64,000 nt of DNA, from the NCBI RefSeq assembly GCF_016432865.1, contig NC_067400.1, forward strand, positions 632,896,001-632,960,000, in the 5' to 3' direction. Made by a program: the position numbers and the translations under genes. The notes beneath the pieces are model-generated. The model searched no databases and was not told the origin of the DNA. It worked only from the letters and a program-made list of their open reading frames with translations. Shown here one piece after another: positions 929 through 2,438 of this stretch (position 1 is its first letter; the number at the start of each line of letters is the position of its first letter). The DNA is from Antechinus flavipes. Its lineage: Eukaryota.

Positions 929-2438
929 TCAAACAGTTGTAGGCCCCCCTTGCCCGGGGCCGGCCCGGCCAGCAGCAGTATGTCGGGCAGCTCCAGGGCC
1001 GGGCTGGTGGCGGCCACGCCCATGGTCACCTTGTTGGCCACCTCTCCGAACCGAGTCACCTGCGGGCGCAGGAGCTGACGTCACTTCGCGGCTGGAGGCC
1101 CTGGCTCAGCGCGCGGGCAGCCGGAGATCCCGTGACTCCATTGGCTGGGGGGGGGAGAGGGGGCTGTGTCACCCCCAGGGGGGAAGGGCTGCCTCTAGGC
1201 TCGCACCTGGACGAAGTTGCTTTCAAATATGGGGAAGTCGCAAAGCTGGTCGAACTCCCCGCTGGACAGATAGCGCTGGAGGCGTCCGGGCCTGGGGGAA
1301 GTGGCCTGCAGGGGCCTCGGCCTCGGGAAGGCCTTGGCTCCTGAGGAGGGACCAGAGTAAGCGATAGCCCCCCTTCCCCGCCTGTCCTCCCCACCCACCC
1401 CGGGGGGCGCCTGCTCCATCTCCAGCCCCGCCCTCACCTGCCCCTCGGGGCCCCTGCTCCATCTCCAGCCCCGCCCTCACCTGCCCCTCGGGGATCCCTG
1501 CTCCATCTCCAGCCCCGCCCTCACCTGCCCCTCGGGGATCCCTGCTCCATCTCCAGCCCCGCCAGCCTGGCCCCTCGGGGCCCCTGCTCCATCTCCAGCC
1601 CCACCCTCACCTGCCCCTCGGGGATCCCTGCTCCATCTCCAGCCCCGCCCTCACCTGCCCCTCGGGGCCCCTGCTCCATCTCCAGCCCCGCCCTCACCTG
1701 CCCCTCGGGGCCCCTGCTCCATCTCCAGCCCCGCCCTCACCTGCCCCTCGGGGATCCCTGCTCCATCTCCAGCCCCGCCCAGCCTGGCCCCTCGGGGCCC
1801 CTGCTCCATCTCCAGCCCCGCCCTCACCTGCCCCTCGGGGCCCCTGCTCCATCTCCAGCCCCGCCCCCACCTGCCCCTCGGGGATCCCTGCTCCATCTCC
1901 AGCCCCGCCCTCACCTGCCCCTCGGGGCCCCTGCTCTATCTCCAGCCCCGCCCTCACCTGCCCCTCGGGGCCCCTGCTCCATCTCCAGCCCCGCCCTCAC
2001 CTGCCCCTCGGGGCCCCTGCTCCATCTCCAGCCCCGCCCAGCCTGGCCACTCGGGGATCCCTGCTCCATCTCCAGCCCCGCCCAGCCTGGCCACTCGGGG
2101 CCCCTGCTCCATCTCCAGCCCCGCCCCCACCTGCCCCTCGGGGCCCCTGCTCCATCTCCAGCCCCGCCCTCACCTGCCCCTCGGGGGCCCCTGCTCCATC
2201 TCCAGCCCCGCCCAGCCTGGCCACTCGGGGATCCCTGCTCCATCTCCAGCCCCGCCCAGCCTGGCCACTCGGGGATCCCTGCTCCATCTCCAGCCCCGCC
2301 CAGCCTGGCCACTCGGGGCCCCTGCTCCATCTCCAGCCCCGCCCTCACCTGCCCCTCGGGGATCCCTGCTCCATCTCCAGCCCCGCCCTCACCTGCCCCT
2401 CGTGGGGCGCCCGGCTCCGGCCGTCGGCCCGGCTTCAT
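929..2438 (-). CDS. GARIN5A: Golgi-associated RAB2 interactor 5A (FAM71E1), 5' part; coding exons 2438-2393, 1340-1207, 1059-929; 3' exons not found in window
   Basis: Spliced translation [15 protein letters not shown]|[45 protein letters not shown]|[44 protein letters not shown]. It matches recalled human FAM71E1 ([59 protein letters not shown]). All junctions are GT-AG with consistent phases (1,0,2), and the head-to-head position with EMC10 is syntenic. Exon 1 is the least certain. Confidence 0.85.
1410..2400. repeat. 43/44-bp GC-rich minisatellite, 23 units, filling GARIN5A intron 1
   Basis: Unit CTGCTCCATCTCCAGCCCCGCCCTCACCTGCCCCTCGGGG(AT)CCC; units counted by hand; variant units carry CCAGCCTGGCC. 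Confidence 0.97.

Follow-up and report, generated by a model that had tools for sequence, protein, structure and literature searches.

How does the spliceosome choose when a single intron offers it many identical 5' splice sites? The question is raised by intron 1 of GARIN5A (FAM71E1) in Antechinus flavipes, which we analysed in a stretch of 64,000 nucleotides ('the window': contig NC_067400.1, positions 632,896,001 to 632,960,000; positions below are counted from its first letter, and GARIN5A lies on its minus strand). This intron consists mostly of a minisatellite whose first unit straddles the exon 1/intron 1 boundary and which reiterates the donor of exon 1. From the sequences compared, and by analogy with known systems, it seems probable that the donor with exon end 2393 is the one used, that the array is spliced out in its entirety with intron 1, and that it is itself near-neutral. 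The GARIN5A array is a large, strong-site example of the boundary minisatellite found in human F7, and no new kind of element. It offers a natural, strong-site counterpart of the F7 model for studying how the spliceosome picks among many identical donors.

Tandem Repeats Finder reports one single array, at 1404-2402, with a period of 43, 23.0 copies and 92% matches. It spans the 2393|2392 junction, and its homology reaches deeper into exon 1 than the boundary drawn by the program: the final 26 nucleotides (nt) of the exon can be aligned with the final 23 nt of the unit, at 22 matching positions. Extent and alignment together bear out the claim, made when this DNA was first read, that the array starts inside exon 1 and reiterates the donor. 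Parsing unit by unit also returned exactly the counts given then. Among the 23 units, 14 carry the donor CAG|GTGAGG (exon ends 2393, 2349, 2174, 2001, 1958, 1915, 1828, 1741, 1698, 1655, 1611, 1525, 1481 and 1438), two carry CAG|GTGGGG (exon ends 2131 and 1871), and seven have lost the donor, reading CCAGGCTGGG at this place. Intron 1 (2392-1341, 1052 nt) holds 13 further 9-mers CAGGTGAGG identical to the authentic donor, plus two CAGGTGGGG, and the array makes up 989 nt of it (94%, where about 95% had been claimed). The unit is confined to this place: when the 64 kb were searched with up to three mismatches, all eight matches fell within the array (0 expected).

Two of the extra donors, with exon ends 2174 (+219 nt) and 1958 (+435 nt), had attracted attention as potential alternative sites. 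Both are indeed in frame and stop-free, since the open reading frame (ORF) that begins at ATG 2438 stays open down to 1911, its stop being 1913-1911. The accompanying statement that the other donors shift the frame stands for most of them, but not for those at +522, +738 and +912, which are in frame by length and lie beyond this stop. Masking of the pseudo-sites by RNA structure was considered and rejected, as 300 nt of the array fold worse than shuffled sequences (z = +3.0). No Rfam family was matched in window 1000-3200.

The layout of exon 1, intron 1 and the acceptor at 1340 depends on comparison with other marsupial and eutherian gene models, all of which are predictions. In the window, exon 1 ends with GAGGGGCAG|GTGAGGGCGG at 2393, and the acceptor ...CTTACTCTGGTCCCTCCTCAG| precedes 1340. 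Sminthopsis and Sarcophilus have kept both exon 1 and its donor; at the other end of the intron, the acceptor block GCTTACTC.GGTCCCTCC.CAG|G is invariant, save at two positions, in Antechinus, Sarcophilus, Sminthopsis and koala. The koala donor is found 6 nt further upstream (GAG|GTACAG, with an exon 1 of 40 nt in the same phase; koala locus L005, 3035-3060), and the dasyurid donor position reads CAGCTGAGG there, its GT being now CT. The N-terminus that splicing from 2393 would produce in Antechinus, ...|AKAFPRPRP, has counterparts in models from six other marsupial species: ...|AKAVP in Sminthopsis, ...|AKVVP in Sarcophilus, MKPGRGQEQGAPRGAG|AKAVP in Monodelphis, MKPGGREQGAPRGAG|PQAAP in bilby, and a diverged form of the same peptide in wallaby and koala. 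It also resembles the eutherian N-terminus MKxG...GGAG. On these grounds we accept both exon 1 and the acceptor at 1340 as real, in line with the original prediction, and the use of donor 2393 in Antechinus appears well supported.

How did the array arise, and how old is it? Intron 1 was compared as DNA in Sminthopsis, Sarcophilus (two assemblies) and koala, and by gene span only in wallaby, wombat, Monodelphis, bilby and Gracilinanus. In Sarcophilus, intron 1 measures 611 nt (573 nt in the older, error-prone assembly), and both assemblies contain 12 units of 45-49 nt; ten of the 11 internal donors are intact, which makes 11 donors in all. The Sminthopsis intron is larger (2043 nt, about 40 subunits of 44-52 nt, 14 donors in all) and is organised in a 92-nt higher-order repeat, in which one subunit retains CCAG|GTGAGGACGG while the other has lost the donor (CAGTGAAGG). 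Antechinus units measure 43 or 44 nt. The identity between units reaches 94% within Antechinus and within Sarcophilus, and only 84%, 72% and 74% between genera. This higher identity within than between genera indicates concerted evolution, each array having been homogenised separately. The donor is not specially conserved in this process: the block GCTGGAGA.GGAGCAGGG is equally conserved between genera, and half of the Sminthopsis subunits are without a donor.

In the 215-nt intron 1 of koala, Tandem Repeats Finder detects no array. A local alignment nevertheless finds about 1.7 unit equivalents there (score 58, against 28±5 for shuffled sequences, with a maximum of 45), including a decayed second donor, GCAGATGAGGGCAGGG. 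Judging from gene spans, intron 1 would be about 100-120 nt long in bilby and in Gracilinanus. Because koala retains about two decayed copies, the first boundary duplication would predate the dasyurid/diprotodont split, unless it arose in parallel; the large expansion, judging from these introns, is dasyurid. A plausible course of events is that a 43-bp piece, composed of some 24 nt of the 3' end of GARIN5A exon 1 and the first 19 nt of intron 1, was duplicated in tandem long ago, and that the copies later expanded in dasyurids to between 12 and about 40 units, homogenised lineage by lineage. As to the other marsupial introns, arrays do recur in Sarcophilus and Sminthopsis, but koala has none and the in-frame open donors are not shared: Sarcophilus has them at +93 and +141, and Sminthopsis has none. 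Given that they differ between genera, a conserved N-terminal extension encoded by the array is unlikely. The wombat (Vombatus ursinus) model XP_027697035.1 has a repeat-like N-terminus, ..RGWRWG..GQVRAG..GGAG|AKAV, in which one donor motif is read through and splicing takes place at another further on, a hint that wombat, too, may have more than one copy of the junction.

Minisatellites that begin with a monomer lying across an exon-intron boundary are described in five human genes: F7, IFI6, CBS, LMNB2 and PDGFA (Borensztajn et al. 2006, PMC1557585). As in GARIN5A, the array of F7 intron 7 (37 bp repeated 5-9 times) begins with a boundary-spanning monomer, and its identical pseudo-sites, some of them in frame, face one acceptor. 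The two differ in that the pseudo-sites of F7 are weak (TGG|GTGGGT), number 4-8 and follow an internal exon, and that splicing of F7 has been measured, whereas GARIN5A has 15 copies of a strong site of the CAG|GTGAGG type behind a first exon and is known here from sequence alone. When F7 intron 7 (IVS7) was studied experimentally, the identical downstream pseudo-sites proved functional, yet were unused while the upstream site was intact (PMC1557585). Splicing in F7, LMNB2 and PDGFA is confined to the authentic donor, which lies furthest upstream, while that in IFI6 and CBS extends to the two closest pseudo-sites (PMC1557585). With IFI6 (6-16) intron 2 (25 pseudo-sites) and CBS intron 13 (15-20 repeats), GARIN5A shares the reiteration of many donors, and these two genes set a precedent for the use of several; unlike them, Antechinus has a first extra donor that shifts the frame, and the use of any extra donor in GARIN5A is hypothetical. 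LMNB2 (100 bp repeated 10-15 times) and PDGFA intron 4 (81 bp repeated 16-18 times) also have long boundary arrays that reiterate the donor, in which only the authentic site is used, but their units are longer, and gene and lineage are different.

Two further comparisons concern the boundary itself. In eutherian GARIN5A, exon 1 is annotated as ending at either of two in-frame donors, separated by 27 nt, at the same boundary but without an array, the evidence being at the protein level only. The isoforms of Moschus read ...FGGAGEAGPGVMA|ERPLV and ...FGGA|ERPLV (P0043/P0076); the same pair is found in Microcebus (P0064/P0112) and in a Logan transcript (P0157). The extra eutherian peptide, GEAGPGxMA, resembles the marsupial donor read-through GEGGAGDGA. 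In the model of Rogers, introns are said to be born by tandem duplication of an AGGT-containing segment. Each GARIN5A unit likewise contains CAG|GT, and removal of whole units, from a GT to a later CAG, restores the junction, as do the five micro-introns of the RefSeq model discussed below. Unlike in the Rogers model, the GARIN5A intron existed beforehand, as koala and eutherians have it, and duplication lengthened it rather than created it.

Taken together with the comparative data, these precedents lead us to favour the following working of the array. Each intact unit carrying a strong copy CAG|GTGAGG, the pre-mRNA would offer 16 donors to the acceptor at 1340. First exons favour cap-proximal donors, and it is on this preference and on the analogy with F7-type genes that 2393 is expected to be the main donor. 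Its use would splice out the array whole and make the conserved N-terminus ...|AKAFP. The copies further downstream would mostly go unused, like the pseudo-sites of human F7 IVS7, LMNB2 and PDGFA; if any of them contribute minor isoforms, in the manner of IFI6 and CBS, it would be the nearest, at +44 (frameshifting) and at +219 (in frame). The array itself would probably be a selectively near-neutral, unstable GC-rich repeat, neither a coding sequence nor a tuning device.

The public RefSeq protein of this species, XP_051846266.1, is at odds with such a scheme. Its locus (GCA_016432865.2, CM028219.1) is the same DNA as the window, without a mismatch over 7988 nt, and contains the same array. 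Residues 1-163 of the 356 are encoded by the minisatellite (window 1438-2287, which is 6001-6850 in the numbering of the public locus, L001), and the conserved exon 1 is omitted. The protein fits the genome only if five GT-AG gaps, of 43, 86, 43, 43 and 173 nt, are opened in the array. Each gap begins at a donor copy, ends at the CAG of a unit further along, deletes whole units and keeps the frame open; without the gaps, every frame of the array is closed within 175 codons. Mammalian spliceosomal introns have a lower limit of about 70 nt, above the 43 nt of the smallest gaps. The 356-residue model is, in our view, an artefact of prediction to which the repeat gave rise. It is flagged here as a faulty public protein, and it exemplifies how such arrays may mislead gene predictors.

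Several observations weigh against the use of 2393 with removal of the array as a whole. XP_051846266.1 has its start within the array, continues unspliced past the acceptor at 1340 into exon 2 and has no junction at 2393, and the Sarcophilus GenBank model KAM9033533.1 likewise starts at the ATG of a unit and reads through; should the gaps of the former rest on RNA-sequencing alignments, unspliced transcripts that contain the array do exist. The other marsupial models are predicted, and may have copied one another via protein alignment. No antechinus protein fragment with either junction was found among those derived from Logan. In classical in-vitro work with duplicated strong donors, the copy nearest the 3' splice site was reportedly favoured. 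The F7 pseudo-sites are weak, and the GARIN5A copies are strong and behind a first exon, so that the precedent may not transfer. Finally, an earlier study of duplicated splice sites, by another group, contradicted the scanning model (PMC1557585).

Alternatively, several of the reiterated donors could be used. On the original proposal, the balance between productive transcripts and those targeted by nonsense-mediated decay would then depend on array length and unit order, and the donors at +219 and +435 would add 73 or 145 Gly/Ala/Arg-rich residues. The strict identity of the 13 internal GTGAGG copies to the authentic 9-mer is compatible with this proposal, as is the constitutive use of the two nearest pseudo-sites in IFI6 and CBS (PMC1557585). 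Moreover, units 2-4 of Antechinus are without the site, which makes the in-frame +219 the second available pseudo-donor, and the eutherian isoform pairs, in which exon 1 ends with nine residues more in one member than in the other, indicate that this boundary tolerates in-frame alternatives. However, the extensions that could be made change from genus to genus, none of the three ranges of unit length is a multiple of three, and the 5 of 15 extra donors in frame correspond to the one third expected by chance. The restriction of F7, LMNB2 and PDGFA to the first site (PMC1557585) also speaks against it, and no protein with the predicted extension was found in public collections. We therefore rather disfavour tuning and N-terminal extension, and consider this alternative unlikely. 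A bolder version is that dasyurid arrays are kept as a dose-dependent sink for the U1 small nuclear ribonucleoprotein, or donor ladder, in spermatids, array length setting the amount of productive GARIN5A splicing. If so, array length would vary among males, in a genus with extreme sperm competition and male die-off, and the loss of donors nearest the authentic site (units 2-4, 7 and 8 in Antechinus, the first four subunits in Sminthopsis) would be a trace of selection. Losses do cluster near the authentic site in Antechinus and in Sminthopsis. This clustering gives p = 0.05 by Fisher's test (p = 0.03 if weakened donors are included), and we attach no weight to it because the units are copies of one another and not independent events. 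This version we regard as a very long shot.

Two other scenarios dispense with the donors. The array might be exonic, with transcripts that start in or upstream of it, remain unspliced at 1340 and are translated from ATG 1419 or 2287. The two read-through models, one of them on this same assembly, agree with this, the frame from ATG 1419 is open into exon 2, and a conserved eutherian N-terminus that is initiated in intron 1 and continues into exon 2 (MGPAMRRP.., in rat, gerbil and mole models) suggests that an internal start is an old option of this gene. But the RefSeq model requires the five internal introns, each removing whole units, failing which the frames close as described. The ATGs, present in 22 of the 23 units, would act as upstream starts, and the DNA of Sminthopsis and koala has no ATG at the place of the read-through start. 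The branch-point, pyrimidine and CAG block at 1341-1365 is conserved as expected of a splice acceptor. Word searches with the 80-residue ORF that crosses the acceptor retrieved genomic or transcript fragments of eutherians only, and nothing from Antechinus, and those with the 175-residue read-through ORF returned no match. We find an exonic array quite improbable. The array could also act as DNA, its GC boxes and G-quadruplex motifs modulating a bidirectional promoter of EMC10 and GARIN5A, in which case the donors would be incidental. Its sense strand contains 21 GGGCGG motifs and 10 non-overlapping canonical G-quadruplex motifs, it lies about 550 nt from the EMC10 ATG, and it persists in three dasyurid genera. 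Yet its CpG observed/expected ratio is only 0.41, unit sequence, length and copy number vary freely between genera, koala has no array, and the gene spans of bilby and Gracilinanus imply none. Such a role appears highly improbable to us.

Between splicing from 2393 and the use of several donors, nature has already made the constructs. Three related species have 11, 14 and 16 donors with differing spacings and frames, and RNA from testis could separate oriented scanning from a proximity rule.

Table 1. Features of GARIN5A exon 1 to exon 3 and of the intron 1 array (window coordinates)
Feature	Position	Strand	Remarks
Minisatellite, 43/44 bp, 23 units	1404..2402	-	Tandem Repeats Finder and unit-by-unit parsing; first unit straddles exon 1/intron 1; 15 reiterated pseudo-donors
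GARIN5A exon 1, coding part	2393..2438	-	ATG 2438; 46 nt, ends on first base of a Gly codon, phase 1; same exon in Sminthopsis and Sarcophilus models
Authentic 5' splice site CAG|GTGAGG	2387..2395	-	Exon end 2393; same GAGGGGCAG|GTGAGGG in Sminthopsis and Sarcophilus RefSeq models
First pseudo-donor, exon end 2349	2341..2351	-	+44 nt; predicted frameshift, stop at start of exon 3
Pseudo-donor, exon end 2174	2166..2176	-	+219 nt, in frame, open; would add 73 residues
Pseudo-donor, exon end 1958	1950..1960	-	+435 nt, in frame, open; would add 145 residues
Intron 1, non-repeat tail	1341..1403	-	Branch-point-like CTTAC, pyrimidine tract, acceptor CAG
GARIN5A exon 2	1207..1340	-	Residues identical in XP_051846266.1
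GARIN5A exon 3	929..1059	-	Peptide matches GARIN5A/FAM71E1 orthologues, up to 95% identity
ATG start of XP_051846266.1	2285..2287	-	Within the array; from spliced fit, locus mapping L001 x = window 8288-x
ATG in last unit	1417..1419	-	In frame with exon 2 without splicing; start of read-through model
Conserved 5' flank (5' untranslated region / probable core of promoter shared with EMC10)	2439..2520	-	90% mean column identity, three dasyurids and koala

The identity of the gene, as first proposed, is borne out by its Rab2B-binding domain (PF12480) and by its position between EMC10 and a MYBPC2-like gene. The peptide of exon 3 is 93-95% identical to marsupial proteins named GARIN5A or FAM71E1, and the domain is found at residues 164-356 of XP_051846266.1 (E = 1.2e-15), a protein that agrees with the translation of the window at every residue of exons 2 and 3. 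When the exon 2 peptide alone or the EMC10 signal peptide alone was submitted to Pfam, no match was obtained. GARIN5A is arranged head to head with EMC10 and adjoins the MYBPC2-like gene, an arrangement matched in seven other marsupial loci; across the eight, the neighbours are a protein with the ECM10 domain PF21203 and an Ig/fn3 protein. The mouse gene, Garin5a, is expressed mainly in the testis; knockout males have misshapen sperm heads and reduced fertility (PMC11236154).

Conservation is higher in the 80 nt that precede the GARIN5A ATG than in the coding exon, and this flank is probably the core of a promoter that GARIN5A shares with EMC10. Beyond this flank, we noted an NRF1-like word, GCGCATGCG, at about 2743, and a CACGTG at about 2931. 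The public coding range of EMC10 starts at ATG 2747 (window 2747-2775, plus strand; ATGCGTACC...AAG|GTAGTA), some 200 nt before the ATG of the signal peptide (2954) and only about 310 nt from the GARIN5A ATG, which suggests an alternative or mispredicted first exon.

Tandem repeats also occur on both sides of the region considered here. Just downstream of the EMC10 start codon, a 39-40-bp unit with the octamer motif ATGCAAAT (TCATTTGCATGCC on the opposite strand) is present in 2.2-2.5 tandem copies, in Antechinus (window 3055-3142, plus strand) as well as in Sarcophilus (L003 4696-4794; L004 5274-5372). Intron 3 of GARIN5A contains, in all three dasyurids, a second tandem repeat, which is C-rich and degenerate, with periods of 17-20, 36-37 and 54-56 (L001 8277-8482, extending beyond the start of the window; L003 7427-7619; L002 9432-9510).

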